Shown here: one piece after another, positions 3,156-59,645 of the stretch
Position numbering within the stretch: position 1 is the stretch's first letter
Layout of the letters: each line of letters starts with the position of its first letter
Assembly: GCA_010909165.1 (NCBI GenBank)
Contig: MU008173.1
Coordinates: 1,178,001-1,242,000, forward strand
Direction: 5' to 3'
Source: Anthoceros angustus
Taxonomy: Eukaryota > Plantae > Anthocerotophyta
DNA: 64,000 nt
The notes under the pieces: model-generated
Databases searched by the model: none
What the model was told of the DNA's origin: nothing
The model's input: only the letters and a program-made list of their open reading frames with translations
Translations under genes and position numbers: made by a program

Positions 3156-6100
3156 AGCATTTAGGCAGTAGGATGCACTGTCTAGCGGAGCGTCTACCAC
3201 ACACAGGACATTTGGATGCATTCGGATGACATTTGTTTCTTTATTAGAAAAAAATTTCTAATAGGAAATCAAGAAAATGTTTGAGAAACCCTTTTGTAGT
3301 TATTTTGTTTGATTTGTTTATAGGAATTTTGTATTTCTAGGAGCCCGTTCTAGCGCATCTATTGCCAGATTGTTGCAAAGCAATCATCGCACGCTAGAAC
3401 GGCCGCCAAGCAAAAATATCTTTATAAAATCATATAGAATTACAATATGTTTCTTGGAATTTTCTAAAATACAAGAATTCTGGCCAAATGAATGGCCGAT
3501 CCTCAGGACGGGCATATGCGGCCTGGATGGCATAATCGCCAAATACAACCTGGTGCGCAACGCAGAAGAAGAAGCTCACGATCTTCACCATCGCCCGCCT
3601 CCACGAGGACTCCTCAAAATCTCCCAAATGTGCAACCTGCTATTGTTGGTAACGGCAATCTTCGGGGTTTCCTAACCACAAACGTAGCACCGCACACCAG
3701 CATATCACATTTAAGTTCTAGACTAGAATCCTGATGACATGTAGATGCTTTTGAAAACATAAGTCGAAAAATTGCTGCTCTTTCTGAGGACTTACAATCA
3801 TTGCTGGAGCAGGTTGGTCACTTGGATTTCAAATTGCTTGCTTTGTTAAAGCTCGCTTCTTGCTAACCTCGCAATCGAGGGATGTAAGCATGCTACAAAA
3901 CTAACAAGCATCATAAATTTGAGCATCCAAACTCGTGTCCATCATGCATGACCTATTCCTTTAATCATTTGGGAGATTAGGAAAACACAACATAAAGGAA
4001 AAGGTAGATAGGAGATGGTCAATTTGCATGTGCAGACCAACGATAACCCATCTTACCTCAGAAAACAGCGGGCAGCCTACCCTTGATGCACTTGTAGCAT
4101 CATAACTCTTCTGAATCCTCACACTGTTAACGCAAAGGATCACAGTGCATTAGAAATTCATCCATCACATCCTCACCGTGAGGAGGAAAACATGGGTGAC
4201 GCTAATTTAGCGGGAGGGATTTTAGGAAAAGGATAGATTCGGGGAGATTATGACATCTGGGTACTTAGAATGCGGAGCACTTCAAAACAAGCGTGGCCTT
4301 GGGTAAATGGAACATCAAAGTCCTCGATCATTGGTACCCCTCACCGATCAAGGCACTTGATGCTTGGAATACAAAGGATGAAGTGCGTTCCTCCTTGAGT
4401 GGTCTCACCGACATGTTGAGACAGACTTGCAAAACCTCACCGATATTTGGACGCTGCTCCAAAGTCTATTGCCGGAACAGATGACACAAGTCAAATGACG
4501 CCTTCGCAACATACAAAACTTGAAGATGAAAGAAGGAGAATCCATTGAAAACACTTGACTACCTTTAGATCCCTAGTCTCCAAGTTTGAAAGTGCACGAT
4601 AGTGTGAAGGATCGTCTCATCCTTCATTTCATGATGTCACTCCCAGTCTTGGTCACATTTCGACCTCATTCAACACCTCGCAACTACAAGGCGAAGATTG
4701 CCAAGGTGCAGTGTTGATCTCCCAAAACAACATTTGCGAATTAGTGGGAGCTTCTTCGTGAAGAAGTCACAAGAGGACAATTCAAACGTCAAAAAGAAGC
4801 TTTGTACACCAACAACAAAGGAAAGGGCAAAAGCCCAACCCGAGTGAGCAGAATACCTCAAGTGTGCGGCTCACAACTTCTCCGGAAGAAGCCCAAGAAG
4901 GCTGGAAAATGCCATGGTGCCAAATTCCGTGCCATTGGGAGTCCGAGTGTCGAAGAAGCCCCGAGTACCTCGCAAGGAGGGCAACTCCACTTCACGACAC
5001 ATGTTGTGGTGACTAACAAGGCTCTACCGCAGCCCTCACCGTAGGGACCAGGAGTTTTCCTCACCCTCTAACCCCACATGCTTGTTTGCAAATACCAAGG
5101 CAAACCCATACTGAGTGGTTCCTTGATACAGTGCAACTGCCTTTGTCTGTTTAAGTTCATTCGTCACATACAGGTTAGTTCAAAACATATTTGTTTACCT
5201 AGGTGACGATAGCAGGCTTGTGTGCCCTGGTGTTGGCACTGCTGTTTGTCATCCTTCAGCACGCCTTGCTTACAGACGTGTATCATGTGCCTGAAATGAC
5301 CAGAAACTTGATTTCTGTTAGGAGGTTGAATATGGATAATCATAGTCACATCCTCTTCACTCCGGTAATGTAGGATTATAGATGCTTTTGATCATCGCAA
5401 AATCCTAGCCTATGGATCATCGACCATGATCTCTTTAGATCCCTCTAGTCTCCAAGTTTGAAAGTGTCTGCGCAGGTGTGAAGGATCGGGGCTCTCATCC
5501 TTCATTTCATGTCACTCCAGTCTTGGGCACATTTCGACCTCATTCAACACCTCGCAACTACAAGGGCGAAGATTGCCCAGTGCAGTGTTGACCTCCCAAA
5601 ACAACATTTGCGAATTAGTGGGAGCTTCTTCGTGAAGAAGTAACAAGAGGACAATTCAAACGCCTGCAAATGAAGCTTTGTACACTAACAACAAAGGAAA
5701 GGGCAAGAAGCCCAACTTCGAGGTAGACATACACCGTGTGCTAGCACTCGCAAGGAGCTTCTACGAAGCCAAGAAGGCCGGAAAGTGCCACCCAAATTCC
5801 GTGCCATTGGGAGTCCGAGTGTCGAAGAAGCCGGAGTTCCCTGCAAGGAGGGCAACTCCACTTCACGACATGTTGTGGTGACTAAACAAGGCTTACTGCA
5901 CACGTAGGGACCAGGAGTTTTCCTACCCTTGCTAACCCCACATGCTTGTTTGCAAATACTCAAGGCAAACCCATACAGAGTGGTTCCTTGATACAGTGCA
6001 AAACACATCTGTTGACAAGTTCATTCGTCACACAAAGTTAGTTCAAAACATATTTGTTTACCTAGGTGACGATAGCGTGCTCGGTGTGCCCCGGTCACGG

Positions 6101-8743
6101 CTGTCGCCGCCCTTGCATCACACTCTTGCTTACGATGTGTATCATGTGCCCGAAATGACAAGAAACTTGATTGCTAGAAGGTTGAATATGGATAATCAAA
6201 GTCACATCCTCTTCACTCCGAGAATGTAGGATTATAGATGCTTTTGATCATCGCAAAATCCTAGCCTATGGATCATCGACCATGATCTCTTTAGATTGCA
6301 CACCACGCCACCTAGCTTCAAAGTCCTACGTTCGAGACAACAGTAGCAGAAGAAGAAGCTAGGTTATGGCATGCACGCTTAGGTCACCCTCACGAAAGTT
6401 GCAAAAACTAGTTGCTAGTGACCTATCTGATGGTAAAATTGGCGCTTGCCACCCTTACCTCTCTGTGAAGCGTCTGTCCAAACGTCATCACAACCTTCAA
6501 GAACAAGCTCCTCACGAGCTTCCGAAGTGCTTGAACTTGTGCACATCGACATATGTGGGCCACTCACCCTCAATTGGTGGTGGCCGATACTTACTGCATT
6601 TGACAAGACGAGATTTGTCATGGCTTACATCTTAAAAGCTAAAAGTGAATGTTTCTCTTTGTTCAAAGACTACATGAAACTTGTAGAGAGATGGATGTGA
6701 AATCGAAAGTCCTACGTTCGATAATGGTGGAGAATTCACATCCAATGAATTTCACACCTACTGCAAGGACGAAAGGATATGCAGACAACTTACAGTGTAT
6801 ACGCTGCAATAGAATGGCGTTGCCAAGCGCTTGAACTTGATCTTACAGGAGATGGTCTCCTCTATGCTTCACCAAGCCTCTTTGCCACTATCCTACTGGG
6901 CTGAAGCCCTTATGACAGCTGTGTATCTACGTAACATACAAAACTTGAAGATGAAAGAAGGAGAATCTATTGAAAACACTTGACTACCTTTAGATCTCTA
7001 GTCTCCAAGTTTGAAAGTGCCGCAGATGTGAAGGATCGGGGCTCTCATCCTTCATTTTCCTCGATGTCACTCCAGTCTTGGTCACATTTCGTGACCTCTT
7101 TTCAACACCTCGCAACTGCTAAGGAAAATCGCCAAGGTGCGTGTGTTGACCTCCCAAAACCACATTTGCGAATTAGTGGGCGCACTTCTTGGGAAGAAGT
7201 AACAGAGATGCTTTAAGCGTGCAAATGTAAAGAAGCTTTGTACACCAACAACAAAGGAAAGGGCAAAAGCCCAACTTCGAGGTAGAGAATACCTCAAGTG
7301 CTAGCACTCGGAGCTTCTACGAAGAAGCCAAGAAGGCCGGAAAATGCCACTGGTGCCAAATTCCGTGCCATTGGGAGGCAGTGTCGAAGAAGCGATGAGT
7401 TCCTAAGGAGGGCAACTCCACTTCACGACACATGTTGTGGTGACCAAACAAGGCTCTCACCATGTAGGGACCAGGAGTTTTCTTCTCACCCTCTAACCCC
7501 ACATGCTTGTTTGCAAATACCAAGGCAAACCCATACAAGTGGTTCCTTGATACAGTGCAACGCATCCGTTTTCTTTAAGTTATCATTCACCACATATGAG
7601 TTAGTTCAAAACATATTTGTTTACCTAGGTGACGATAGCAGGCTTGTGTGCCCTGGTGTTGCCACAGTCAAGCTGTCAGTCCCTTCAGGCATCACGCTCT
7701 TGCTTACAGACGTGTATCATGTGCCTGAAATGACCAGAAACTTGATTTCTGTTAGGAGGTTGAATATGGATAATCATAGTCACATCCTCTTCACTCCGAC
7801 AGAATGTAGGATTATAGATGCTTTTGATCATCGTAAAATCCTAGCCTATGGATCATCAGACCATGATCTGTTTAGATTGCACACTCACATCAGTCACGCC
7901 AACGCCAGCCTAGCTTCAAAGTCGCAGACAACAGGGTGGAAGAGTAGGTTATGGCATGTACGATTAGGTCACCCTCACAGCGCAAAGTTGCAAAAACTAG
8001 TTGCTAGTGACCTATACGGTGATGGTAAAATTGGCGCTTGCCACCCTTACCTCTGTGAAGCTGTATGTCATCCAACGTCATCAAGCGACCTTCAAGAACA
8101 AGGCTCCTCACGAGCTTGAGTGCTTGAACTGCTCGACATATGTGGGCCACTCTCACAGCCCTCAATTGGTGGTGGCAGATACTTCCTTACATTCACAGAC
8201 GACAAGACGAGATTTGTCATGGCTTACATCTTAAAAGCTAAAAGTGAATGTTTCTCTTTGTTCAAAGACTACATGAAACTTGTAGAGAGATGGACAGGGA
8301 AATCGCTGAAAGTCCTACGTTCAGACAATGGTGGAGAATTCACATCCAATGAATTTCACACCTACTGCAAGGACGAAGGGATATGCAGACAACTTACAGT
8401 TGTGTATACGCTGCAATAGAATGGCGTTGCCAAGCGCTTGAACTTGATCTTACAGGAGATGGTCTCCTCTATGCTTCACCAAGCCTCTTTTACTATCCTC
8501 GGGTGAAGCCCTTATGACATGTATCGTAACATACGCCCTACAAGCTGCCGTGCTAGGACAGACCCCCTTTGAAGCTTTCTATGGCAGGAAGCCAGCTATC
8601 CAACATCTTCGCACTTTCGGATGCATCGCTTATGCCTTCATCCCTAAGGTCAAGAGGACCAAGTTAGCTGCCAAAGCCAAGAAATACCTCATGTTAGGGT
8701 ATACTGAAGGTATAAAAGCCTACAAGCTATATGATGTACCTCA

Positions 8744-11700
8744 AACAGTGTTTCTCAGCATAGGGGTTTGTCTCCGAACCCCATTTTGGCCCCAACCATC
8801 CAGAAATGCACATGTCTCATTTCACTGCTTTGATGAACCACAGCCCATGCATCCGAGCCCAAGAAGACCTAATGCCCACCGTCCGCACAAATGCGGACAC
8901 ACCTTTGTACCAAGTGGCGGATACTTCCTTACATTCTGCAACGACGAGATTTGTCATGGCTTACATCTTAAAAGCTAAAAGTGAATGTTTCTCTTTGTTC
9001 AAAGACTACATGAAACTTGTAGAGAGATGGATGGAAATCGAAAGTCCTACGTTCGAGACAATGGTGGAGAATTCACATCCAATGAATTTCACACTCACCA
9101 AGGCGAAGGATATGCGACGACAACTTTCTGATTGTGTACTGCAATAGAATGGCGTTACGCTTGAACTTGATCTTCGGAGATGGTCTCCTCTATGCTTCAC
9201 CAAGCCTCTTTGCCACTATCCTCGGTCAAGCCCTTACTGTGTTATGTATCGTAACATACACAAGCTGCGTGCTAGGGCAGACCCCTTTGAAGCTTATGGC
9301 GAGGCGACTATCCAACATCTTCGCACTTTCGGATGCATCGCTTATGCCTTCATCCCTAAGGTCAAGAGGACCAAGTTAGCTGCCAAAGCCAAGAAATACC
9401 TCATGTTAGTATATCTTGAAGGTATAAAGCCTACAAGCTATATGATGTACCTCAAACAGAGCATATAGGGTTTGTCTCCGAACCCCATTTTGGCCCCAAC
9501 CATCCGTAAATGCACATGTCTCATTTCACTGCTTTGATGAACCACAGCCCATGCATCCGAGCCCAAAGAAGACCTAATGCCCACCGTCCGCACAAATGCG
9601 GACACACCTTTGTACCAAGTGGCGGATACTTCCTTACATTCTGCAACGACGAGATTTGTCATGGCTTACATCTTAAAAGCTAAAAGTGAATGTTTCTCTT
9701 TGTTCAAAGACTACATGAAACTTGTAGAGAGATGGATGGAAATCGAAAGTCCTACGTTCGACAATGGTGGAGAATTCACATCCAATGAATTTCACACTCA
9801 CCAAGGCGAAGGATATGCGACGACAACTTTCTGATTGTGTACTGCAATAGAATGGCGTTACGCTTGAACTTGATCTTCGGAGATGGTCTCCTCTATGCTT
9901 CACCAAGCCTCTTTGCCACTATCCTCGGTCAAGCCCTTACTGTGTTATGTATCGTAACATACACAAGCTGCGTGCTAGGGCAGACCCCTTTGAAGCTTAT
10001 GGCGAGGCGACTATCCAACATCTTCGCACTTTCGGATGCATCGCTTATGCCTTCATCCCTAAGGTCAAGAGGACCAAGTTAGCTGCCAAAGCCAAGAAAT
10101 ACCTCATGTTAGTATATCTTGAAGGTATAAAGCCTACAAGCTATGATGTACCTCAAGCAGAGCCGGCATAGGGTTTGTCTCGAACCCCATTTTGGCTAAC
10201 CATCCGAAATGCACATGTCTCATTTCCTTTGTTTTCAATGATTTGCGAACCCACAGCCCATGCATCCGAGCCCAAAGAAGACCTAATAGTATGCCACAAA
10301 TGCGGACACACCTTTGTACCAAGTGGTAGGATGGTAGCACTTATGCTCCAAAGAGCGGAGTGCGCCAACGTCCGACTTATACTCCAAAGAGGTGCAATAC
10401 ACCGGGTTTGGAGAGGGTTGCGTCAATACTTGTGTAGGCAAGCACTTTCGCTCAAGTTGCTTGTGCACACTTGCCACCGCACCAACACTCACATCAATTC
10501 TCTTTTCAAACCCCGTGATTGAGCAATCCCGGATGGCGGGCATACCATCGACTGGCCCCTCGTGTCGGAGATAAGCCGCACTTAGATCTGCGGCATTGGG
10601 CGAAATTGGGTAAAGGATGGTGAGGCCTCCTCAACCGTTCTTGATCAAACTCTTGAGCTTACATTTCTTCTTGTCAAGTCCATCCGCTTTCAACCTTAAT
10701 CTATCCATGGGTGGCACATGGAGCAAGTCGGATCTTAAATTCAAAATCTCTGGCGAAGCTTGGCTATAGTTCTCTGAACACCTAGCCATTTGTAGTGGGC
10801 GTCACGGTGGGTATAGAGCGGTCCTCCTTGAGCCTCATGAAATACTCACCATTTGGTCAAAACCCCACTCGGGCGACCCCTCTTTCTTCAGATACTCTGG
10901 CTCTCACTAGGGCTCGCGGTGGCGAGCGGATGCTCTCTTATACTTGTGTTCATCAAGCAGGCTTACTCAAGGAAAATCATCTATTCTATTTATTTTCTTG
11001 CTTCTCTGCAAAACATTGTGAAACATTATCGTCTTCAAAAGGTTGGCCATTAGAAACCACCATCATACATGTCGAATTTTGGAAAATGTAGCTCATCTAG
11101 AAACCAAGGCCTATGCATCTATCGTGCATCAAACTCGAATGAGCGGACATTTGGCGCACCAATCAAAGAGATCCAAATGCAAGTCATCGGAAGGGCACAT
11201 AGAGTAAGGCCAAAAGGTTTTACATGTTGTATACAAAGCGAATGTGGGAATATAACATCAACCAACAAATGATTTTCAAAAATAATATTCATGACTTTAC
11301 GCCTAGATCTGGGATGATTTACAAATTTTTCAAACCACTAAAATCAACACTCCATCCTAGTATTGATACGCCTCTAGGTTGTATGTGGAGTTGTTACAAA
11401 GTTTTCAAAGCGCCAAAAACAAGCAACCATCCTAGTACTAATCCGACCCAAGAGTGCTTAACAAGTTCTAAAGCACCAAAGTCAAGCACCCCATCCTAGT
11501 ACTAATCCGACCCAAGAGTGCTTAACCTTGGAGTTCTTATGCCATTGAGTCTATCTGCACCTATCCCGAGATATGCTTAAAGACAAACAATATATATATA
11601 TATTTGCGGGGCGTACATCCACCATTTCCATCTCTGGCGCCCACAAGATTGGGGTCTCTCAAAAAATGCGCCGACGCAGGCTTTAGCAGACTCGCGCCAA

Positions 11701-12274
11701 TGTGCGAGCGTCCGGCGCATTGTTCCAATTCCTTCTATGTTTTCACTCTAACAATGGAGATCCTGTGGTTGTGTACTCACGATGCACGGGCGTCAGCTAC
11801 TTTTAGAGTCGTAGTTTGGTCCTCTCGAGATGGCCATGATCGGGCTATCGGTTAATGTTCTCTCACAATTCGCGGACGTCCGGCGCGATTTACTCTTTTA
11901 CTTGCGGTGCTACTTTTGCGTGTTGGTTGCGCCGGACGTCCGCAGCTTGGCTTGTTGGACTAATTTTGTTTGGTTTTGCCCACTGCTCACCCCGCTAGGA
12001 AGTACTATCGCTGCGAAAGAGGTGTTTAGGATTCCTAGCACATTAAAATCCTTGAAATCCCTTCCTTGTGAAGGTGAAATCCATGAACCTTCTTGACCAA
12101 CATTAGCGTAAGTATTCACGAGAAAATAACATGGTCAATGTCTTTCAGTACATGTCTAAAGAGTGGTTTTGCTAAAGATGATGCATTTTGGTCCGTTTTC
12201 GGGGGTCATTTTTTGGTCTTTAGGGACCCAAACCCTTTTTATGGAGAATAACCCCTATGCTGAGAGACGCTGTT
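8744..12274. mobile_element. Non-autonomous TIR DNA transposon (AACAG...CTGTT ends, 4-bp TSD CTCA) inserted in the A1 integrase region
   Basis: 25-bp TIRs 8744-8768 and 12250-12274 match at 23/25. CTCA on both flanks. Removal restores the copia frame KLYDVPQNKVVYARSVTFDE. Span includes duplicated copia segments; no transposase recognised. Confidence 0.85.
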
Positions 12275-14796
12275 CTCAAAACAAGGTGGTTTATGCACGC
12301 AGTGTGACCTTTGATGAAGGTCGACTTTGGCAGCAAGTGGGAGCTACTCCCACACAGGAGGACTTTGATCTTTCTGCCTTGCCTGACGTCACTGTTTTTG
12401 ATGATTCTGCTCTTGAGGAGATTGCTCCTGCGGGGGGGGAAGAACAATAGCAACACGATGATCAGGAGCAAGCAGATGAAGCTGAAAATTTTGCTGAAAA
12501 CTTGCAGCAACAACCTCCTCCAGAACCTGAACCAGCTGACCTTTTACCTGAACCTGATCTACCAGACCCCGATCCAGACATTGATGAGAATCATGCTGAG
12601 GACGATGACAGCGATGCAGAGGGTGAACCTGAGTTTTTACCCCTACATCCTGAAGACCCACCACAACCTGAGCGTCGTTATCCTGCAAGAGAAAGATGGG
12701 CACTGACACACCGATCACGGGACTTTAGAAACAATTACTAATGCTACTTCCTCGGATCCTATCGAACCTCAATCCTATGAAGAAGCTCTTAGCCGTCCTG
12801 ATGCTGCAGAGTGGAAAAAGGCAATTCAATCAGAATATGATTCGCTGATCAAGAATGGAACTTGGGAACTAGCCAAGTTACCTCCTGATCGCAAGGTGGT
12901 GTCTTGTAAGTGGGTTTTCAAAGTGAAGGTAAAGGCTGATGGAACTTTTGACAGGTACAAAGCACGACTCGTAGCTCGTGGCTTTTCGCAAGTGCCTGGC
13001 CTTGATTACTTCGAAACATATGCTCCTGTGATGAAGCTGGCCACTTTTCGCACAATCTGTGCCCTGGCAGCACATCAAGACTATGAGTTAGATATGTTCG
13101 ATGTAAAAACAGCTTTTCTACATGGCGAGTTGGACACGAGATCTATATGCGACTGCGAGGATCACAGTAAAGGGCAAGGAAGATCATGTCTGCTTATAAA
13201 AACCCTCTATGGCAAGCAATCAGCATTAGAGTGGAATCTGTCTCGACAAGAAGCGCGGCACTTGGTTGTGGAATGAGTGCAGCATCAGACTCTGATCTCT
13301 GGTGTGATGTTGTGTGCTATCTCAAAGATGTCGTTGATGATCGATTCTATCTGCAATAGCCCCACATTCATCACCAAAGTTAACAAGTCGCTATCTACCA
13401 AGTTTGAAATGACTAACCTTGGAGCACTTGTGAGTCAGCCTGAACTTTATTGGAGGGATAGGAAAAGCGGATCTATATCTCTCACACACCTCGATACATT
13501 AGAGTGTCTTTGAGCAACAGCTTGAAGGATGCAAAACCAAGAATGACGCCCATTGCCTTGTGGACGAAGTTTAGCAAGTCGATGAGTCACGAAACACAAA
13601 AGGACATAGATGAAATGAGGTCACCCTCGGGAAGGGTGTTGGGAAACTAATCTATGCAGCCAACACCACAAGACCTGAAGTTGCCTACACCACTAGCGTA
13701 CTCTCGCAATATCTTGAAAATCCTGGTCAGACCCACTGGATAGGGGTTAAGAGAGTTGTTAGATACCTAAAAGGAACATTAAACATATGGTAGCAGGAGG
13801 ACCTATATGCTGGTCCAGCAAAAAGCAACCCACCGTTGCTACATCAAGCACCGAGGCTGAATATCGCGTTCTTACAGCTGCAGCCAAGGAGATTGCGTGG
13901 TGCAAATTGATGTTTAAGGAACTTGGGCTGCCACTTCCGACCTGTACCATGATAAAGACGGACAACCAGGGGTCAATGAACTTGGCTAAAAATCCTGTAT
14001 TCCACTCTAGCACGAAGCACGTGGAGGTGGAGTATCATTTTATCAGGGACCTCATCAAGTCAGGACAAATCACGTTGGAATATATACCAACCGCAGAAAA
14101 TCCAGCAGATGTGTTCACTAAGCCCCTCAAGGATGCAAAACCAAGAGCATTGCCATTGCCTTGTGGAAGTTTAGCAAGTCGATGAGTCACGAAACACAAA
14201 AGGACATAGATGAAATGAGGTCACCCCCAGGAAGGGTGTTGGGAAACTAATCTATGCACCAACACCACAAGACCGAAGTTGCCTACACCACTAGCGCATC
14301 CTCGCAATATCTTGAAAATCTGAGTCGGACCCAATCGGATAGGGTTAAGAGAGTTGTTAGATACCTAAAAGGAACATTAAACATATGGTAGGGAGGACCT
14401 ATATGCTGGTCCAAAAGCAACCCAGTTGCTACATCAAGCACCGAGGCGAATATCGCGTTCTGCACCAAGGAGATTGCGTGCAAATTGATGTTTAAGGAAC
14501 TTGGGCTGCCACTTCCGACTGCATACCATGATAAAGACGGACAACCAGGGTCAATGAACTTGGCTAAAATCTGTATTCCACTCTGTAAGCACGTGGAGGT
14601 GGAGTATCATTTTATCAGGGACCTCATCAAGTCAGGACAAATCACGTTGGAATATATACCAACCGCAGAAAATCCAGCAGATGTGTTCACTAAGCCCCTC
14701 AGTAGGGATGCACACTACAAACATATGAGAAGTCTGGGCATGGGCAGCCATGAAGGCTACCCAGATGCCCTACCTACCAAACCCTAGCCTACAAAG

Positions 14797-16193: not shown

Positions 16194-16629
16194 CTGATGT
16201 TCTTTGAATCTTTGAAAATGTATGCTTACCAAGCTCTGAGCTTCGCATCCAATGAACCCACTCCCACTGTGATTCAATCACTATGCATCTCGTAGTGGCG
16301 TGAGGAATCTTGAAGAGTTTCTTGAGCTCTCGGCGCTTTCAACCCAGTTTGTCATAGTGGCATAAGCAAGCAGAGGCATAAACACATTGTTAAATGCGCG
16401 TTGGCAAGCTTTCTCAGACATGCTCTAACCGGAAGAGAGTGCAAGAAATTTGAGACACAGTTGTGTGATAAACGCAAAGACATTCACTAGGCGAGAAGCC
16501 GCACGAAATGCAACAAAACGTTCGAGGGTTTCGATAACTCATGATGAAACCATCTACCTACCTATGAGAATTGTGTCCTCTCCATGTGCATGATAAAACG
16601 GGCGCGGTCTGCTGGCCCCCCGGAGACAT

Positions 16630-16735
16630 GAAGAAGAAGAAGAAGAATTTTATTTAAGTCCACTAAGGACGGATTTCCGTCATGGGACTTGGTACTGCAT
16701 AACTTGGACCATGTTGTGCCTAAGGTATACTCGGC
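16630..16735 (-). mobile_element. LINE-type 3' end module (stem-loop, AATAAAA, (TTC)n)
   Basis: Reverse strand CTTAGGCACAACATGGTCCAAGTT..GTACCAAGTCCCATGACGGAAATCCGTCCTTAGTGGACTTAAATAAAATTCTTCTTCTTC closely matches 51240-51331. Confidence 0.7.
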
Positions 16736-22775: not shown

Positions 22776-25713
22776 CCTTGGTTTCAATCTCCCTTAGTTT
22801 TCTTGAAACCTCTAGCTTAAAAGAACTTCTCAATCTTAACATACCAGGGAAGTGCAAATTGCTTAAGGGGCGTAATAGGCAAGTGGGACACGTGGATGGT
22901 ACCGAGTGGAAGACTGACATGCAGCGGACCAGGACCGCAGAGTTGTTAGCGGCCGTTATAGGCAGGTAACCACGAACCAAGGACATGTGCCAAGAAGGCA
23001 GCGGGCGTGAAGTTGCAGTACACAATGCAGGACTGTGGCAGTTACTGGCAGCGAAAGGACGTCTTCCCGCGCATCAATTACGCCTGATGCCCTGGTGCTG
23101 AGAGAAGACCATTTTCCCACGACTTCGGTAGCTTCGCATGCCGCGATAGATACCCGCTCTTTGGCGCTTCTCTTCCGACGTTCGAGCGCAACGCCAGGTG
23201 ACCTTCGTCATCTTTCGGCGCGTCGATTCCTCCGGAGCTCAGGAGCCTCGCAGAGAGCATCACAGCCCTCCATACCTCAGCGACAAAGCGAGCGGGGCGT
23301 GGATATGGGACCCAAGAAGGCGGCAGAGGTCTGGAGCCCTGGCGCTTGGTGGAGAAGAACATTGTGACAAGGCGCTACCCGGATTTTGGCCCATGGCTGG
23401 CCGAAGCAGAGGAGCTGGTGTAGGAGTGACACCTCAACATCTCCCAGACGATATAGACCTTTGACAGCGATGGCCGGAATCCGGAAAGATGTCGGCAACC
23501 AAGGCCGGCCCACTCTAAGAGCTATGGGAGGACCCAAGGAGGTAGACAGCGGAGGTCCTACGGGCGGTTTACAATCGCCCAGCAAAGGAGGTAGGGGGCA
23601 TAGTGCCGGAGCCCCTGAAGGTGAAGGGAAGGGTGGAAGCGGCCAACGTGGCGCTGTTGAGGCCGGGGACGCAGCGCTCCTCCAATGGCTGGCTGATGTC
23701 GGACATGTTCGACCGATGGGTGAGGGCAGTGACGATAATCTGCTGGTCTTCCTGCACGCCCTCTAGAGGGGCAAGAGGGCGGATTGGGGGCGAATCATCT
23801 TTGCCCGGACAATAAGGAGGCGGAAGTCACAATGAGAGGCCTCCGTCGCTTATCCCCTTTAATAGTGCATATATGGGGACACCTCAACCTCAAGGAGGGA
23901 GAGGAGGAACGAGCCTTCTGAGGGTCCCACCAAAGCGGAGTGGAGGAAGCACAGATCAGGACCCGCCAAGGGGCGACGCGCCTAGGAAGAAGAAGACTGG
24001 GAGGGCATCCCGGATGCCATCCGTCTGGAGCGGACCCCCTCCCCCCCAAGGGAAGTATGGGAAGAGATCCCTGCTTCCCTCCTCTTGGTTCCTCCCTCGG
24101 AGCAGCAGTCCCCGGTGGTTGCTATGACGGGGATGGAGTTGGTGCCAGTAGCACCAGCAGTCCCGAGGCCTGCTCCAGACTAGGCGATCGAGCCCCGACG
24201 GACCAGAATGGAAACACGGAAGAGGAAGCAGGCGCCCAACCCCACCGCCCTAGTGACGACCCCGGTGCTCGCTTGCCAACAAGAGTGGGAAAGGTGAGGA
24301 GGCGTGAGGCAGAACGAGACGCCCTGAGCGCAGGGGCCATTGGCAGCAGCCCCACCCGGAGCTGGTCCTCTCCTCGTAGGGGAGAGGAAAGTGAGCCAGC
24401 TCTCGGACTCCTTGACCTCCACCGGACCCGAAGGCGCGCAGAGAAAGAATTGGCCGCGAAGCTCGCCAAGGAGGTCGACGGACCTACTCCGGACGTACGG
24501 ACAGGACCTAAGGGTCCTTATTGGGTCCGGAGTACCCAACCCCGGACTCACTCCGGACTGCGGTATGGCGGTCTTTAACGGATCGGGAGATGCGGCCACC
24601 GGGTGCTTCTTGGGAGCGCCACGGCGGTGGCCGTGGAAGAGACACAGCGTTTGGCGGCCGGGACGCAGCTCCTCCAATGGCTGGGCCGATGTCGGACATG
24701 TTCAGATGGGTGAGGCGTTGTATAATCTGCTGGTCTTCCCGCCCTCTAGAGGGGCAAGAGGGCGGATTGGGGCGAATCATCTTTGCCCGGAGCATGGCGA
24801 GGCCGGAAGGCGGATGAGAGGCCTCCGTCAGGCGCTTATCCCCTTTAATAGTGCATATGGGGACACCTCAACCTCAAGGAGGGAGAGGAGGAACGAGCCT
24901 TCTGAGGGCTGGCTACCCGCCGGAGCGTGGAGGAAGCACAGGACTGGGACGGCCGCGGCGACGCGCCTAGGAAGAAGAAGACCGGGAGGGCATCCTGATG
25001 CCATCCGTCTGAGCGACCCTCCCCAAGGGAAGTATGGGAAGAGATCCGCCTCCTCCTCTTGGTTCCTCCTGAGCAGCCCCGTGGTTGCTATGACGGGATG
25101 GAGTTGGAGCACCAAGAGTCTCCCGAGGCCCGCCTCCAGACTAGGCGATCGAGCCCGACGGACCGTAATGGAAACACGGAAGAGGAAGCAGGCGCCCAAC
25201 CCCACCGCCCCTAGTGACGCCGGTGCCTTTGCCTGCCAAGTGAGTGAGGCAGAGGAGGCAAAGTGAGACCATGAACGAGACGCGCCTACCCAGGCCTTGA
25301 GGCCGGGACGCAGCCCCACCCGGAGCTGGTCCCTCCTCGAGGGAGAGGAAAGTGAGCCGCCTCCTGACTCCTTGACCTCCACCCACCGGCGCCGCGAGAA
25401 AGAATTGGCCGCGAAGCTCGCCAAGGAGGTCGACGGACCTACTCCGGACGTACGGACAGGACCTAAGGGTCCTTATTGGGTCCGGAGTACCCAACCCCGG
25501 ACTCACTCCGGACTGCGGTATGGCGGTCTTTAACGGATCGGGAGATGCCTGCGTCACTGGCAGGCTTCTTGGGAGCGTCACCGGCGGTGGCCGTGGAAGA
25601 GACACGGCGCGTCTTGGCGGCCGTCATGGACGGCATGTTGTGGGGACTCTGCGGAACTACAGAGAAGACCCAGGAAGTGGAGGCCACCAGGAGGCGAATG
25701 GTGGAGCTCCAGG

Positions 25714-27379
25714 AACAGCGTCTGTTTAGAAAGGGGTTTCTCCTATCAAAAGGGGTTTTGGAAAAAATCCCAACCCTATTTCGCCGGAAACTGAAGTTGG
25801 TTTGGTTTTTGTTGGTTTTTGTAGGTGTTCATCCATCGGTTTCGGGCATTCTCGGCTCGGCACCACTTCCTGTCGAGTCATTTACACCGCCTTTATACTC
25901 GTTCATGGCGATTTAGTCGGTGTGATGAAGGGCTTGACCTCATTGTTCCATAATTTCGCATGTCCGTAGTTTCGTGATTTTGTGTGGTTTTTGTATGTTT
26001 TGTATACAGGGGCCTAGGCGTGCATAAGTGCGCGCCTAAACAACGCTATGTGCAAACTTGTGCATGCAATGTGCAAAAAGAGCGCAAAAAATGATCTTCT
26101 AATGGGGAAGCATGTCCTTTTGGCGGTCTGAGGATGTGCCGGAACTCCCGACAAAATAACAAGTAGCAGACATCGGCGGAGGTTCACCTAGACCACTCTT
26201 ATATACCTATCCTATGCCTTAATGTGACAAAGAACACCCTATCCCCTTTTTATTCTTTACGGTGTTTCCGTCTCTTTCGGCGGTGACCTAGTACCGGGTT
26301 ATCATCAAACATGCCCCAAATTGGTGAACAAGTGCATGCACCAGGGGGCGGTGCGCGCACTGTGCAGCAGCGCGTGCACTGGGGCAAGGGGCCGGTGCGC
26401 ACTGCGCGCACTGGGCAGCCTGTGCGCTGTGCACTGGGGCAAGGAGGCCCAAGTGCACACAAGTGCACGCACCCAAGGTCAAGAAGGGCCTGGGAGCATG
26501 AACCCAAATGGTTCATGCCTCCTAGTGCATTCCTAGACGGTTCATCCAAAGAAAAAAAGAACCAAAAGTCTAAAAAAACCCTAAAAACCCCTAAAAATTA
26601 CAAAAAAGTCCAGTTTTTTGAGGCAAGTGCGCGCACTTGCTCTAAAATTTTGACAATTTTTTGAATTTGTTTGTATTTGTTTTGATATTTTTGTTGTTTT
26701 AAAGGGTTCCTTTCGACGTTTTCAACCTTTTTTGTGCAGCTCCCTAATGTGGATATGTTCTTATCTTTTCTTAACCCTCATCTTTTTTCTAGTGGTTAAA
26801 ACTTTGAACTAGTAGTGAGAACCTTTGCATCTTTTGAATCTTGAGACGCTTGGCGGGCCCGCCTAAGTGCACTATGCCACTCTCATTCTCGCACTCAAGA
26901 GCATCGTGCCAAAGAAGATATTATTGTCCCAATGTCTAAGGAACAAAGTCTGTAAAATTCTGAGCGAGAGTATAGTCATAGGATTGACTAGTATGAATGA
27001 AAGGTTGGTGCGCAAACAAGTTTGCGCACTGCAATTACAGCAAGCCCTAAAACTCTAAATGTTTAGATATCGTCAACACCGCAATGATTGCCGATGTTGA
27101 GACCTGCTTAGATGGGCGCGCATAAGTTTGCGAATTGTGTCCAGCTTTGAAAAAGCCGAACGAGAATGGGACTTTAGGTTTTGCCACGACTTGCAATCTA
27201 CAATCTCAAATAACGTGTATCAAAACAATTATTCAAAAGGTTGCGGGTAACATGTCTGCAGAGAAATATCAAAAAGCCTGATTATAGTGCAGATTTTTTT
27301 CAAGTGCAAAAAGGGGTCCGGCCAAGTCCGTGTGCAAAAAGGGGTTCCAGGAGAAACCCCTTTCTAAACAGACGCTGTT
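25714..27379. mobile_element. Non-autonomous TIR DNA transposon (AACAG...CTGTT ends, 4-bp TSD CAGG/TAGG), 1666 bp
   Basis: Perfect 31-bp TIR AACAGCGTCTGTTTAGAAAGGGGTTTCTCCT at 25714-25744 and 27349-27379. Removal restores the host frame VELQGQTEVAQAARKKAE. Confidence 0.87.
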
Positions 27380-28615
27380 TAGGGTCAAACGGAGGTGGCA
27401 CAGGCCGCCAGGAAGAAGGCGGAGTCCCTCGCCAGAATTGAGGAAGAGAAGCGCCGGACGGCAGAAACAGAGGCAAGGTCCGCCTAGCAGGACAGGGCTA
27501 GGGTGCTCCAACTGTGCGAGGAGCTGAAGCCCGCCCAGGAGGCACACGCGCGGGCAGAGGACCTGAGCGAGCAAATGAAAGCAGCCAGGGAAGCCGCGGA
27601 GGGAGCACGCAAGCAGGCGGAGGAAGCCAGGGAGCTGGTGGAAAATGCAAAGCGAAGAGCAGAGCCAGGCGCAGGACGCTCAGCTGAAGGGGACCAAGGA
27701 AGCGGAGGCGATTGCCAAGACCGACCGGGACCACTACCGTTGGGACCGGAATCGCTGGAGGGAGGCGGCAGGAGCGGCCACAGCAAGCCTGAAGGTGGAG
27801 TAGGCGGTCGCAGAGCAAGCACGCACGGTCCATGGAGAGGAGATGGAAGTGCGGATAAGGGAGCTGGGAGATCTCCGGCTGCAGCTTCAGGAGGTGGAAG
27901 AGGCATGCCGGGAGATGGAAGGGCAGAAGGAGACCCTGGAGCTGCGACTCCAGGTGATGGAGGAAAGGAACGGACTCCTCCAAGGGCGGATCGAGGCCTA
28001 GGACCACGAGCGGGAGATAAAGAGGCTCCAGCTCTGCCTAAGAGTGGAGGAAAACCTCCGGCGAAGCACGGAGTTAGACGTCGCTGAGCTTGAGAGAGAG
28101 AGAGCTAGTCGATGCCAGGCCTTTGGCAGAACTCCCGGACGACTAGAGCACGACATGGCGGTCCTGACCAAGAAGATGGCGGATCAGGAACGAGCGCAGA
28201 AGGAAGAGCAGAAGCTGTTGATCCGCCTGCGAAAGGCAGAGGGAGAACTCCAGTCCATGGCGGGGAAGTTGGCAGAGCTGCAGAGGGAGCAGGAAGCGGA
28301 GCGCGCCAACGAGAAGCAGCGGCTCCAGGAGCTAGCAGAAGCCTCCTTAACGGCTTCTCCAGATGCGGCCAGGACCAGGTTGGATGACCTTGCGATGGGA
28401 ACGGCGCGCAAGCGACTAGGGACGCCCAGCTACCAGAGAACCTCTAGAGGCGGGAATATATAGTGCTCCGAACCCATGTGGAGGCCATCCAGCAGGTTGA
28501 CTCAGACTTCGTGTATTATCATGCGGAGCTCCTGAAAGCGGTGGGAGCATTTCACCAAGCAGGTGAGGTCGCGAGATTGCTAGAGGAGTCGTAGGGGACC
28601 TGGAGGGAAGAAGGT

Positions 28616-40537: not shown

Positions 40538-42360
40538 CCTCACCGATATTTGGACGCTGGCTCCAAAGTCTATTTTGGAACCGATGACACAAGTCAAATG
40601 AGATCAACATACAAAACTTGAAGATGAAAGAAGGAGAATCCATTGAAAACACGACTACCTTGGATCCCTAGTCTCCAAGTTTGAAAGTGCACAGGATAGT
40701 GTGAAGGACCGCTCTCATTCGCATTTCATGATGTCACTCCTCGAATCTTGGGCACATTTCGTGACCTCATTCAACACCTCGCAACTACAAGGGCGGAAGA
40801 TTGCCCAGTGCAGTGTTGATCTCCCAAAACAACATTTGCAATTAGTGGGAGCTCTTCTTCGTGAAGAAGTCACAAGAGGACAATTCAAACGTCGTAAAAT
40901 GCAAGCTTTGTACACTAACAACAAAGGAAAGGGCAAGAAGCCCAACTGAGGTAGACAAAATACCTGTGCTAGTAGCTCGCAAGGAGTCTCTACACCAAGA
41001 AGCCCAAGAAGGCTGGAAAGTGCCACCGTGCCAAATTCGAGGCCATTGGGAGTCCGAGTGTCGAAGAAGCGAGTACCTCGCAAGGAGGGCAACTCCACTT
41101 CTCGACACATGTTGTGGTGACTAAACAAGGCTCTACTGCACCTCACCGATATTTGGACGCTGCTCCAAAGTCTATTTCCGGAACCGATGACACAAGTCAA
41201 ATGACAAAGACTTCGCAACATACAAAACTTGAAGATGAAAGAAGGAGAATCCATTGAAAACACGACTACCTTCGATCCCTAGTCTCCAAGTTTGAAAGTG
41301 CATGTGATAGTGTGAAGGACCGTGCTCTCATTCTTCATTTCATGATGTCACTCGAATCTTGGGCACATTTCGTGACCTCATTCAACACCTCGCAACTACA
41401 AGGGCGGAAGATTGCCCAGCGCAGTGTTGATCTCCCAAAACAACATTTGCAATTAGTGGGAGCTCTTCTTCGTGAAGAAGTCACAAGAGGACAATTCAAA
41501 CGTCGTAAAATGCAAGCTTTGTACACTAACAACAAAGGAAAGGGCAAGAAGCCCAACTGAGGTAGACAAAATACCTGTGCTAGTAGCTCGCAAGGAGTCT
41601 CTACACCAAGAAGCCCAAGAAGGCTGGAAAGTGCCACCGTGCCAAATTCGAGGCCATTGGGAGTCCGAGTGTCGAAGAAGCGAGTACCTCGCAAGGAGGG
41701 CAACTCCACTTCTCGACACATGTTGTGGTGACTAAACAAGGCTCTACTGCACCTCACCGATATTTGGACGCTGCTCCAAAGTCTATTTCCGGAACCGATG
41801 ACACAAGTCAAATGACAAAGACTTGCAACATACAAAACTTGAAGATGAAAGAAGGAGAATCCATTGAAAACACGACTACCTTCGATCCCTAGTCTCCAAG
41901 TTTGAAAGTGCATGTGATAGTGTGAAGGACCGTGCTCTCATTCTTCATTTCATGATGTCACTCGAATCTTGGGCACATTTCGTGACCTCATTCAACACCT
42001 CGCAACTACAAGGGCGGAAGATTGCCCAGCGCAGTGTTGATCTCCCAAAACAACATTTGCAATTAGTGGGAGCTCTTCTTGAAGAAGTCACAAGAGGACA
42101 ATTCAAACGTCTGGTAAATGCAAGCTTTGTACACTAACAACAAAGGAAAGGGCAAGAAGCCCAACTCGAGGTAGACAAAATACCTCGTGCTAGTAGCTCG
42201 CAAGGAGCCTCTACACCAAGAAGCCCAAGAAGGCGGAAAGTGCCACCGTGCCAAATTCCGTGCCATTGGGAGTCTGAGTGTCGAAAGAAGCGAGTACCTC
42301 GCAAGGAGGGCAACTCCACTTCTCAGACACATGTTGTGGTGACTAAACAAGGCTCGGCTG
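40538..42360. repeat. About 600-bp gag segment in three tandem copies inside A2
   Basis: Units start at 40538, 41141 and 41752 with the identical junction CCTCACCG. Confidence 0.92.
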
Positions 42361-45300
42361 CAGCCCTCACTGTAGGGACCAGGGAGTTTTCCTACCCTCT
42401 TGCTAACCCCACATGCTTGTCTGCAAATACTCAAGGCAAACCCATACAGGAGTGGTTCCTTGATACAGGTGCAACAGCGCACATCTGTTTCGACAGAAGT
42501 TCATTCGTCACATACAGGTTAGTTCACAACAGATTTGTTTACCTAGGTGACGATAGTAGGCTTGCGTGCTCTGGTGTTGGCACCGTCAAGCTACCTGTCC
42601 CTTCAGGCATCACACTCTTGCTTACAGATGTGTATCATGTGCCTGAAATGACAAGAAACTTGATTTCTAATAGAAGGTTGAACATGGATAATCAAAGTCA
42701 CATCCTCTTCACTCCGATGTAATGTAGGATTATAGATGCTTTTGATCATCGCAAAATCCTAGCCTATGGATCATCTCGACCATGATCTCTTTAGATCGCA
42801 CACTCACACCATCATGCCAAGGCTAGCCTAGCTTCAAGGTCGCTCGAGAGCAAAGCAAGAAGAACAAGCTAGGTTATGGCATGCACGCTTAGGTCACCCT
42901 CACAGAAAGTTGCAAAAACTAGTCGCTAGTGACTGTGTTGATGGTAAAATTGGCGCTTGCCATCCTTACCTCTCGTGAAGCCTGTGCTGTCCAAACGTCA
43001 TCAAGCCTTCAAGAACAAGACTCCTCACGAGCTTCCAAGTGCTTGAACTTGTGCACATCGACATATGTGGGCCACTCCCTCAATCGGTGGTGGCGATACT
43101 TCCTTACATTCACAGACGACAAGACGAGATTTGTCATGGCTTACATCTTGAAAGCTAAAAGTGAATGCTTCTCTCTGTTCAAAGACTACATGAAACTTGC
43201 AGAGAGATGGACAGGAAAATCGCTGAAAGTCCTACGTTCAGACAATGGTGGAGAATTCACATCTAATGAATTCCAGACCTACTGTAAGGACGAAGGGATA
43301 GGCAGACAACTTACAGTTGTGTATACGCCGCAACAGAATGGCGTTGCCGAGCGCTTGAACTTGACACTGCAGGAGATGGTCTCCTCTATGCTTCACCAAG
43401 CCTCTTTGCCACTATCCTACTGGGCTGAAGCCCTTATGACAGCTGTGTATTTACGTAATGATCGCCTACACCGCTGCGTGATTGGATGACCCCTTTGAAG
43501 CTTTCTATGGCAAGCCGCCTATCCAACATCTTCGCACTTTCGGATGCATCGCTTTTGCTTTCATCCCTAAGGCCAAGCGAACCAAGTTAGTCGCTAAGGC
43601 CAAGAAGTACCTCATGATAGGATACATCAAGGTATAAAAGCTTATAAGTCGTATGACGACTCGAACAAGGTGGTCTATGCACGAGCGTGACCTTTGATGA
43701 AGGTCGAACTTGGCAGCAAGTGGGAGCTACTCCCACACAGGAGGACTTTGATCTTTCTGCCTTGCCTGACGTCACTGTTTTCGATGATTCTGCTCTTGCG
43801 GAGATTGCTCCTGCAGGGGGGGAAGAACAACAGCAAAATGATGCTCAGGAGCAAGGAGATGAACCAGAAAATTTTGCTGAACATTTGCAGCAGCAACCTC
43901 CTCCAGTTGCAGAACCTGAACCAGCTGACCTTTTACCTGATCCACCAGACCCCGATCCAGACATTGACGAGGATGAGGCTGAAGATGCTCATCTTCTTGA
44001 CAGTGATGCCGAGGTTGAACCTGAGATTCAACCCTTGCCTAAAGCTCCACCACAACCTGAGCGCCGTTATCCTGCAAGAGATAGATGGGCACCGACATCA
44101 AGGACTTTAGAAAACCAACAGCTAATGCAGCCACTTCGGATCCTATCGAACCTCAATCCTACGAAGAAGCTCTTAGTCCCGATGCCGCAGAGTGGAAAAG
44201 GCAATTCAATTAGAATATGATTCACGATCAAAATGGAACATGGGAACTAGCTAAGTTACCTGGACGTAAGGTGGTGTCTTGCAAGTGGGTCTTCAAAGCG
44301 AAGGTAAAGGCTGATGGAAGTTTTGATAGGTACAAAGCACGACTTGTAGCTCGTGGTTTTCGCAAGTGCCCGGTCTCGATTACTTCAAACATATGCTCTG
44401 TGATGAAGCCGCCACCTTTCGCACAACTGCCTCGGCAAGACATCAAGACTACGAGTTAGACATGTTTGATGTAAAGACCGCATTTTACATGGCAAGTTGG
44501 ACACAAATCTACATGCAGCCCTCGGGATACAAGTAAAAGGCAAGGAAGATCATGTCTTGCGCCTAATAAAACCCTCTATGGCTCAAGCAATCAAGATTAG
44601 AGTGGAATCTTCTGGATGAAGAACTGCGTGCACTTGGATTCGTGAAATGTGTTTGAGACTGTATGTTTACAGATCCGTGACGTTGTGTGCTATCTCGCAG
44701 GTGTATGTTGATGATTTGATTCTATCCCGCAATAGCCCCACATTCATCACCAAAGTTAACAAGTCGCTATCTACCAAGTTTGAAATGACTAACCTTGGAG
44801 CACTTGAGCTCGGGAATCCTTATTCGAGGGATAGAAAAACAGATCTATATCTCTCACACCTCGATACTGCTAGAATGTGACGCTTGGCTTGAAGGATGCA
44901 ACCAGCGACTCCACCGCCATCCGGATCGAAATTTAGCAAGTCCATGTGTCCCGAAACCAAAAAGGACATAGAAGACATGAGGTCGGTCCCCTACAGAAAG
45001 GGAGTTGGCAAACTTATCTATGCTGCCAACACTACACGACCTGATGTAGCCTACACCACAAGTGTGCTCTCGCAATACCTCGAGAACCCTGGTCAAACGC
45101 ACAGGACTGGTGTTAAGAGGGTGGTTAGGTATCTGAAGGGAACATCCAACATTGGGATTCGATTCAGACACATACCTGGCACACCACTTGAGCTGGACGT
45201 ATATACTGACTCGATTATGCTGGTGACATAGATACACGGAGGTCGTTGTCCGGGTGTCATGGTGGCGGAGGGCCCATATGCTGGTCAAGCAAGAAGCAAC

Positions 45301-48961: not shown

Positions 48962-51331
48962 ATGCCACTATTTCACTTTTGCCATGCTATCTTCTGCACA
49001 TAAAATCTTTCTCCCTAAACCTTGTCATCCTGTCAAGCTCTCCAACACTACTCCTCGCCACCCTTGGTTTGATGATGAATGCAAACATCTCCGCTTTCAC
49101 ACTCACAAGTGCCTCCGTGCTCTCAATGTCTCATCCAAGTCTCATCATTCACCGCTGTACAAGGCAATTGTCAAGCCTTATAAGGCTCTTATTGCTGTCA
49201 AAAAGTCTGCTTTCTTTTCCTCCCAGCGTGATCGCCTCTTGAGGCTTCTCAGAGAATCTCCTGGTGGTGGTGCTTTTTGGAAGGAGTTCCACTTTCATCG
49301 AACCATCTTATTGGAGGCCTCTCTTGAGCTTATCTATCATGTGCAAACTCTCTTCTTCCGAGAATCTGTTCCCCCTCTTGCGAGATCTCAGGATCCTGGG
49401 AGCTATTCACTCTTGACCTCATTCTGGGGGCCATCAACAAACTCAGATTTGGGAGAGCCTCTGACCCTGAAGATATCCCTGGAGAACTTTTCTCCTATGC
49501 AGCTCCTACTGTTATTGCCCCTCCCTTAGCTGCTTTGTTCAATGAGGCTTTAGTCCATGGATATCATGAGGCATGGTGTTGGAATGACATCCATTCCATC
49601 TTCAAGACAGGTGATCCACAGCTCCCGCCCAACTACAGGTATATCATGGTTGAGTCCATCTTTGCCAAGATCTTTAGCGCATGCTTGGAAATTCTCACTA
49701 CTTCTTGGGCCGAGAATGCTGGGATCAGAGCACAAGGCCAAGCTGGGTTTCGTCCGGAGCGGAATACCTCAGGATAATCTTTTCACACTCATTGCTATTA
49801 TTCAGGAGGCCAAGAGCAGGTGGAAGGACGATCGACATGTTTATGTCTGTTTTGTTGATTTCAAGAGAGCTTTCGACTCTATCTCCCGCGAGAAGCTCTT
49901 TGCCCGGCTTCATAGGTTGGGGTTGCCTGCTCATCTTTTACATGCCATACAGGTTCTCTATGAAAAGGTGAAGGCCAAGATCCGCACTCCCTATGCTGCT
50001 TTTGACCTTTTGGATTTGCTTTGCAATTTGGGAGTCTTGATCATCCATCTTCTCCCAACTTATTTGGCTTATTCATTGATGAGCTGGAGTCTTGGATTTG
50101 TCGGGGACCACAGGCCTCCTCTCCTTGGTATATATTGCTATTCTCCTATATGCAGATGACATTGCTCTTTTGTCCCATTCTCCTGAGGGCCTCCAACAAC
50201 AACTAGACACATTGTCCCGCTTCTCCGCAGCAAGAGATTTGGAAGTGAACTTGAAGAAGACCAAGGTCATGTTTTTCAACCGGCGGGATGCTGTTGAGCA
50301 CAATTTGAAGTTCTTCTATAATGGTGAACCTGTGGAGGTTGTTCGATCTTATGTCTACCTAGGAGGCACTCTCTATGGCCCAACACTTCAGTGGAAGCTC
50401 TCTGCCTCTACTCGCATGTCAAGGGTGTGGCATCTGCTTGTGGGGGTCAGAGACAGTCCTCTAGGATGCACATCAAGGACATCCCCACTCGGCAATGGCT
50501 CTTCAACACCGTTGTTGTTCTTTCGGCTATGTATGCGGCTGAGCAAGTCCTCCACTCTATCCCACCAAATGATGGCGACATTAGACAACAACGGAGTGCA
50601 TTTCCCTTCAATACTTCTCTGCCGATAACAATAGAAGATAATGTCAAATCAAGGATTTTGAAAGGACCTTGCGGTGGTTCCTGTACCTCCCACCCGATCG
50701 GCAGGTCAAGACTAGCTGATGCTTCTACACTCATAGATTGAAATGTTCGACACCCGATGGATCGGCGTTCACATTGAGTGCGCAATTGGTGAAGGCGCTC
50801 GCGAGTTTGAGCATGTAATGTACGTGCAATAAATAGCCTAATAGTGTTCATACATCGTGAACCATCCGTGAACGGGATTACAGTTTTGTAAGGCTTAATT
50901 ACATACGATGCTTGGATGGATGTATGGCCACAGCATTAGGGGATGCACCGGCATCCCGGTGGTAACGGGCAACCGGAGTATGAGTGGTGGGGCCCACGTC
51001 TGCACACACGCGCGCATTAATAACTTGACGAGTTTTAGGAACCGCTTACCTAGTGGCTGAGCTGAACAGAAACAGTTAAGAAATTGAAGGATATTTAAAC
51101 TTTCTTATTAAGGTTGTATGAGGTCCAAATGGCTTAGGCCAAATGGACACACATTTATAAGAACGCCGTGATTAAGCATCCTGAGCTTAGAGTACTTAGA
51201 TGGGGTGCCTAAAGGGAGTGGATGCCCTTGGTGCAAGTAGCTTAGGCACACCATGGTACAAGTTGTTAAGTACCAAGTCCCGTGACGGAAATCCGTCCTA
51301 AGTGGACTTCAATAAAATTCTCTTCTTCTTC
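48962..51331 (+). mobile_element. 5'-truncated non-LTR retrotransposon (LINE) with RT domain and structured 3' end
   Basis: PWFDDEC, QAGFR, FVDFKRAFDS, LLYADDIAL, VNLKKTKVM across frameshifted ORFs. 3' end GACGGAAATCCGTC hairpin (51284-51297), AATAAAA, (TTC)n. Clade (RTE-X/L1-like) not determined. Confidence 0.9.
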
Positions 51332-51512
51332 AATCACCTCACCGGGCGACGGCAAAGACCAGATTCATGCAAATCGTGCAGCAAGGCTTCAAACGACAAT
51401 ACTGAAACGGGACCAGAAGTCCAGGTTTCCTGATCGTGTCTGAAATAACTAGTACATGTGTATGTACATCCTTACCTTCTCTTCCAGGCAAACCACCACC
51501 GTTTCCCCGCAT

Positions 51513-57514: not shown

Positions 57515-58288
57515 CACCCTGGCAGCACCAGGGGATTAAAGCAGTACGGTCTCCGATGGGGATCTCTCCTCCAACCCGCATATACCATTACCACCACCAA
57601 ATTGCGAACTTCCGTGTTCTACACATATGCTTCATCTCTGAATCTCCAGTCCCACATCTTGTCCTCCAGGCATCCTGCTCTGCTGCACGTCGAGATGCAT
57701 GCCGCGTTCACTTACGTTTCCATCGGTCTCCGATCCCGATCCAGGTCAGACCGACGGGGGTTTTCGGACCGATTAGGGCTTCCGATTTGGAATCGGCCGT
57801 GTGGGTTTTCGAAGCATTTCAAATTTGGTGCGGGTGTGTGGGGCCTGGGTTATTTGAAAACGCGTTTCAGTTGCATTGCTTTTCTTCCCCGGCGTCATTT
57901 TGAACGACTCGTCTCCCTCAACACGCCGCTCCTCTTGCCTTCAAATTTGCGCGGTGCATGTGCCCGTTTCCGACGGCAGGGGGACAGCTGATACTGCGGC
58001 TTGAGCTGCTGCTGCGCTTTTGCAAGCAATTTCGTGTTGGTGTTTGTTTTTCTTTTCTGTTGTGGGAGGGCTGGAGGGAATTGGAAGGAGTCGGGATACA
58101 GCAGCTGGGAGAGGGGAGTAGTGGAGGTGGTGGAAAGAAGAGGGCCGGGGGAAGGGAACAGGTTTGTGGCTGGCCATTTTTGGTTGTTGCAATTTCCCTG
58201 TGTTTGGGGTGATGTGAGTTTACGACAGCTGAGTGTGTGAGCTGGATTTGGTGCAGGCTTGTTGCGGAGAAGATGGCGATTGTGCGGA

Positions 58289-59440: not shown

Positions 59441-59645
59441 CTCTCAGTTTTCTACCCTAATTTTTGGGCCCCTTGGAAGCGAGCAGCTGTCGTAGCGAGG
59501 TGGGGATGCTAGGCGTCATGTTGCGTAGATGAGCGGGTGTAGCCATATGTAATAGCCCAGGTAGGTAAGGACGAGAACACAGTTAATCAAACACAAAAGT
59601 CACACGCAATGTATATGGCGAGCAGCAGGCCGGAGCAGGGATGAA

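Follow-up and report, generated by a model that had tools for sequence, protein, structure and literature searches.

The segment at positions 8744-12274 of the window (the whole 64-kb stretch of DNA analysed), here called E1, is almost certainly a real, old, non-autonomous terminal inverted repeat (TIR) transposon with a 4-bp target site duplication (TSD), and to judge from its termini it is most likely of Sola1 type. It is inserted in the pol gene of a Ty1/copia element, has a relative with the same termini elsewhere in the window (E2), and owes 1.4 kb of its 3.5-kb span to a later tandem triplication of its left junction. Since a survey of ORFs and Pfam matches found no transposase in E1, in E2 or in the remainder of the 64-kb window, the superfamily is assigned from end signatures only.

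Ends and target site of E1

A repeat search returned one long inverted pair between 8500 and 12500, with arms at 8744-8775 (plus strand) and 12243-12274 (minus strand) that are 32 nt long and 88% complementary (28/32). The right arm is an exact match to AACAGCGTCT-N8-AGGGGTT, and the left arm carries two C-to-T changes relative to the consensus AACAGCGTCT shared by the ends, as expected of an old, methylated insertion. In the 64-kb window, the 25-nt TIR core was found on either strand only at the two E1 ends (0 expected from 100 dinucleotide shuffles). Read directly, the four bases outside the left arm (8740-8743) and outside the right arm (12275-12278) are both CTCA. An initial annotation of this DNA had described a TIR transposon with AACAG...CTGTT ends and a 4-bp TSD, and both the TIR pair and the exact CTCA/CTCA duplication were recovered here. 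Flanks of 3 nt are unequal in E1 (TCA vs CTC) and in E2 (AGG vs TAG). PIF/Harbinger and CACTA, with 3-bp TSDs (TWA or other), were rejected, as the 3-nt readings fail in both elements.

E1 splits the integrase C-terminal SH3-like domain of its copia host. The left part of this domain (8514-8743, plus strand) matches PF25597, the retroviral polymerase SH3-like domain, with an E value of 3.5e-20 over profile positions 1-52 of 73, and the match ends exactly at the insertion; the copia pieces to the left and right of E1 were searched separately. Host ORFs upstream contain Pol_BBD and gag_pre-integrase domains. On the other side, the pol frame resumes at 12279-12450 (plus strand), as seen from the ORF and from alignment to a second copia copy, A2. 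The ORF leading up to the left end (...KAYKLYDVPQ) and the one continuing from the right end (NKVVYARSVTFDE...) have the same phase relative to CTCA, and removal of E1 together with four bases restores the copia frame, which bears out the argument of the initial annotation that a 4-bp TSD does so. Frame restoration in E1 and E2 alike requires a TSD length of 1 mod 3.

The paralogous copy A2 spans the site without E1: positions 6933-8734 of the interrupted copy (A1) align with 41827-43656, and 12280-13786 with 43664-45152. A2 is a diverged member of the same copia family and has one codon fewer at this point, so that it does not by itself fix the TSD length. The empty site, which had also been cited in favor of a 4-bp TSD, thus confirms that the element is absent from A2 and leaves the length of the duplication to other evidence.

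A second element with the same termini

E2 is a non-autonomous element of 1666 bp at 25714-27379, bounded by perfect 31-nt TIRs (25714-25744 and 27349-27379). It is flanked by CAGG at 25710-25713 and TAGG at 27380-27383, a 4-nt duplication in which three of four positions agree and the fourth differs by one C/T transition. When AACAGCGTCT-N8-AGGGGTT was searched with up to three mismatches, four sites were found in the window against 0.11 expected, and all of them are the ends of E1 and E2. The E2 interior has no similarity to that of E1. Removal of E2 with 4 nt joins two coiled-coil-like frames (...RRRMVELQ, then GQTEVAQAARKK...), which is weaker evidence than the copia frame, the stretch being GC-rich and having many open frames. 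The window contains no paralogous copy of the E2 site that lacks the element, and a search of the window for further AAC-ended TIR pairs with a TSD returned just noise beyond E1 and E2.

To the left of E2 lies a tandem duplication of approximately 990 bp (23715-25623), in which 23715-24660 and 24705-25623 are 83% identical. This region is GC-rich and contains coiled-coil-like ORFs with no Pfam match, and E2 appears to have inserted into a coiled-coil-like reading frame of it. The interior of E2 is rich in GTGCGC/GCGCAC, with 11 copies where 0.5 are expected, amounting to one third of the copies in the window. Many of these motifs sit within short palindromes such as AAGTGCGCGCACTT, and they may form a putative protein-binding array.

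Probable assignment to Sola1

AAC...GTT ends together with a 4-bp TSD of non-fixed sequence have been published for a Sola1 family: the curated autonomous Sola1 element of Ectocarpus, Sola1-1_Ec32, is annotated with AACCG-CGGTT at its termini and with 4-bp TSDs that tend to end in A (PMC12477816 supplementary file 3). E1 shares the AAC...GTT ends (AACAG in place of AACCG) and the non-fixed 4-bp TSD, and its CTCA fits the bias towards a final A. The likeness, which was drawn from the published description only, does not extend to size or content: Sola1-1_Ec32 is 21.5 kb long, has a TIR of 282 bp and carries genes for a transposase and a ParB-methyltransferase, whereas E1 and E2 are gene-less elements of 1.7-2.1 kb with TIRs of about 32 nt. 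The closest transposase to that of Sola1-1_Ec32 is a moss Sola1 (PMC12477816 supplementary file 3). The initial annotation had held that no eukaryotic superfamily joins AAC termini to non-specific 4-bp TSDs, in a comparison that listed Sola2 and omitted Sola1. Sola1-1_Ec32 does join them, and the proposed novelty therefore fails the annotation's own test, a match of the termini to an already described family.

The host range of Sola is compatible with this placement. Within Sola, TSDs are 4 bp long and termini vary widely, and the elements are present in moss and absent from angiosperms (PMC10741241; PMC9804982); a review gives the Sola1 of Physcomitrella as the Sola of plants (PMC9033089), and Sola1 is the type of Sola known from seedless plants. 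This moss element (Physcomitrium/Physcomitrella; Repbase Sola1-1_PPa) resembles E1 and E2 in its seedless land-plant host and in the 4-bp TSD of its superfamily.

Insect Sola1_NA MITEs are likewise short non-autonomous derivatives with a 4-bp TSD that are mobilised in trans, but their TIRs start with GGACCG where E1 and E2 have AACAG, and their TSDs are AWWT or AWDT, the former having been called a hallmark of Sola1 (PMC3845634). The AWWT preference is absent from E1 (CTCA) and E2 (CAGG/TAGG), which are two sites only. It is not universal within Sola1, as the TSD of Sola1-1_Ec32 is described only as ‘biased towards ending in A’. Sola1 termini are not uniform either, as E1 and E2 have AAC...GTT like Sola1-1_Ec32 and unlike the insect GGACCG. 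To judge from the missing AWWT preference, the plant and brown-algal Sola1 lineages may choose their targets differently from those of insects.

Word searches of the literature returned no paper on Sola1 with AAC termini. When metagenome, prokaryotic-genome and viral collections were scanned with the TIR pattern, they yielded 52, 50 and 1 matches, respectively, all of them single and unrelated, with no inverted pairs and no plant DNA among them. These matches are attributed to chance because their N8 and downstream sequences are dissimilar and none form inverted pairs.

Sola2, Sola3, Ginger1, Chapaev and Academ have all been reported with 3-4-bp or 4-bp TSDs, and E1 could in principle belong to one of these known superfamilies, although we regard this as unlikely. 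Chapaev elements have CAC ends, and we know of no report of Academ or Chapaev from land plants. Ginger1 and GingerRoot resemble E1 and E2 in being TIR elements present in seedless plants, with a 4-bp TSD in Ginger1. They were rejected because Ginger1 ends in TG...CA and GingerRoot in TA...TA, compared with AA...TT in E1 and E2; they further differ in TIRs of 40-270 nt and, for GingerRoot, in a 6-bp TSD (PMC6839031). Sola2, which has GRG/GGC-type termini and a 4-bp TSD, was rejected on account of the AAC termini of E1 and E2; the Ectocarpus family Sola2-1_Ec32 ends in GGCGG (PMC12477816 supplementary file 3).

That the AACAG...CTGTT elements of seedless land plants represent a cut-and-paste superfamily as yet undescribed, moved by a non-Sola1 transposase and resembling the Ectocarpus Sola1 ends by coincidence, is quite improbable. 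Such a superfamily would accord with the lack of a transposase linked to E1 or E2 and with TSDs that are not AWWT. A curated Sola1 family with the same AAC...GTT ends and 4-bp TSD argues against it, as does the occurrence of Sola1 in moss (PMC9033089).

The initial annotation had named hAT as the superfamily that might overturn its description, and this reading fails. In E1 and E2 an internal CAG follows the terminal AA, and E1 could be read as hAT, in which case its termini would be CAG...CTG and its TSD 8 bp long (ACCTCAAA / TTCTCAAA); the 8-nt flanks outside CAG/CTG then agree at six of eight positions. This agreement is coincidental and results from the chance sequence of the target, CTCAAA. 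The corresponding flanks of E2 agree at just four of eight (TCCAGGAA vs TTTAGGGT), although hAT elements require an 8-bp TSD, and all four termini retain AA/TT although the two target sites are unrelated, which indicates that the AA is element sequence. E2 thus rules out hAT, with its 8-bp TSD outside YARNG/CAG termini, and we give a hAT origin of E1 almost no credence.

With Sola1 as the preferred assignment, the AAC-ended, 4-bp-TSD elements of this genome are better filed as Sola1-type non-autonomous families than as unknown.

Anatomy of the termini

An alignment of the four ends of E1 and E2 resolves the terminus into blocks. The outer block AACAG.GT.T is invariant and is followed by an 8-nt spacer that is specific to each family; the inner AGGGGTT (positions 19-25) is again invariant, with TCTCC following after 1-3 nt. 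Motifs resembling AAAAGGGGT recur inside the TIRs. In E2, a direct copy lies 19 nt inside the left TIR and two inverted copies lie inside the right TIR; in E1, there is one inverted copy on the left and one degenerate direct copy on the right.

Because the two blocks are conserved between E1 and E2 while spacers and interiors are unrelated, we infer roles for them. Cleavage and strand transfer would take place at the outer 10 nt, AACAGCGTCT, and the inner AGGGGTT, repeated subterminally as AAAAGGGGT, would be a putative transposase binding site. The combination of AACAGCGTCT-N8-AGGGGTT with subterminal AAAAGGGGT offers a compact candidate recognition site for plant Sola1 transposases.

Past nt 25-32, the resemblance of the E1 left end to the E2 right end, and of the E1 right end to the E2 left end, is not clearly above that of shuffled sequences. 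The best pair past nt 25, E1 right with E2 left, scores exactly as high as the best of 300 shuffles, and similarity of the ends beyond nt 32 is at most suggestive.

Tandem triplication of the left junction

The left end of E1 was found by repeat and alignment comparison to be present three times. The original left end comprises 174 nt (8744-8917, plus strand) and extends to a GTGG duplication breakpoint. Together with the adjoining copia segment 8172-8743 it forms a tandem unit of approximately 0.7 kb (U1, 8172-8917), of which two extra copies occupy 8914-10326, with the joins between units lying in shared GTGG. The first extra copy (U2, 8914-9622, plus strand), which is not part of the original element, consists of the copia copy to 9454 and a degenerate second E1 left end from 9455. 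The second (U3, 9619-10326, plus strand) consists of a third copy of the copia fragment to 10155 and a degenerate third left end from 10156, which runs on into the true E1 interior. Both extra left ends, at 9455 and 10156, carry deletions within the TIR. With 1.4 kb of the 3.5-kb span thus due to the later triplication, the original E1 was about 2122 bp in length (8744-8917 plus 10327-12274).

Identity at substitutions is 96.8% between U1 and U2 (59 gap columns), 96.2% between U1 and U3 (80 gap columns) and 99.0% between U2 and U3 (29 gap columns). As U2 and U3 are the closest pair, the order of events is insertion of E1, a first duplication, and a recent second duplication.

Since tandem duplications abound in the region and the units differ mainly by indels that could be assembly noise, E1 might be suspected of being no transposon but an inverted repeat arisen by chance, or an artefact of assembly or recombination within a rearranged copia element. 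This is extremely improbable given the 32-nt TIR and its exact 4-nt TSD, the copia domain interrupted precisely and in frame, the paralogous site that lacks the element, and the presence elsewhere of a second element with identical termini.

The remaining interior of E1 (10327-12242, plus strand) is non-coding and includes a triple repeat of 64-75-nt units (11319-11526), a (TA)n run and palindromic motifs. The longest ORFs in the E1 interior encode 83-115 aa; the ten longest had no Pfam match below an E value of 0.09, and an Rfam search of the interior gave no match. The initial description of an interior of roughly 2 kb without recognisable coding capacity thus holds as regards coding (ORFs of 115 aa or less, no Pfam or Rfam match) but not as regards structure, as the span is not approximately 2 kb of unique DNA plus ends and 8914-10326 consists of tandem copies. 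Three GGACGTCCGGCGC-type motifs with the 10-nt palindrome CGGACGTCCG inside occur within 250 nt at 11696-11951, in both orientations.

Proposed history of E1

We envisage E1 as a dead cut-and-paste DNA transposon that is non-autonomous and most likely belongs to the Sola1 group. Being gene-less, it would have been moved by a DDD transposase encoded elsewhere. The element, at that time about 2.1 kb long, inserted into the copia element within the coding region of the integrase C-terminal SH3-like domain, and repair of the staggered 4-nt cuts produced the duplicated CTCA. Two tandem duplications of the left junction followed, the first older and the second recent. In each, a stretch of approximately 0.7 kb across the junction (copia flank and first 174 nt of E1) was copied in tandem with the join at GTGG microhomology, probably by slippage or unequal exchange.

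Surroundings of the elements

Both copies of the copia family carry internal tandem duplications of the gag-protease-integrase region with 81-88% identity (4434-8534 in A1 and 40606-42797 in A2). Examples in A1 are 4502-5440, which is similar to 5433-6296 and 6927-7877, and 5433-6939, which is similar to 6988-8534. In A2, units of about 610 bp start at 40606, 41211 and 41827. Local tandem duplication seems to be unusually common in this stretch, or else the assembly is noisy.

A repeat of approximately 45-110 nt containing the palindrome GACGGAAATCCGTC occurs three times, at 1987-2031, 16619-16727 and 51238-51346. Two of them, at 1987 and 16680, bracket copia A1 in inverted orientation at a distance of 14.7 kb. 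As their homology passes the apparent ends, these repeats are probably not TIRs but pieces of some other repeat family.

The region 58000-64000 is GC-rich (60-66%) and gene-bearing, with an ORF containing an Nse4 C-terminal domain, an N-terminal fragment of malate synthase, and a 571-aa ORF with a legume-lectin domain. The domains found across the window (legume-lectin, DUF568, Nse4, malate synthase N-terminal and copia) are consistent with a plant.
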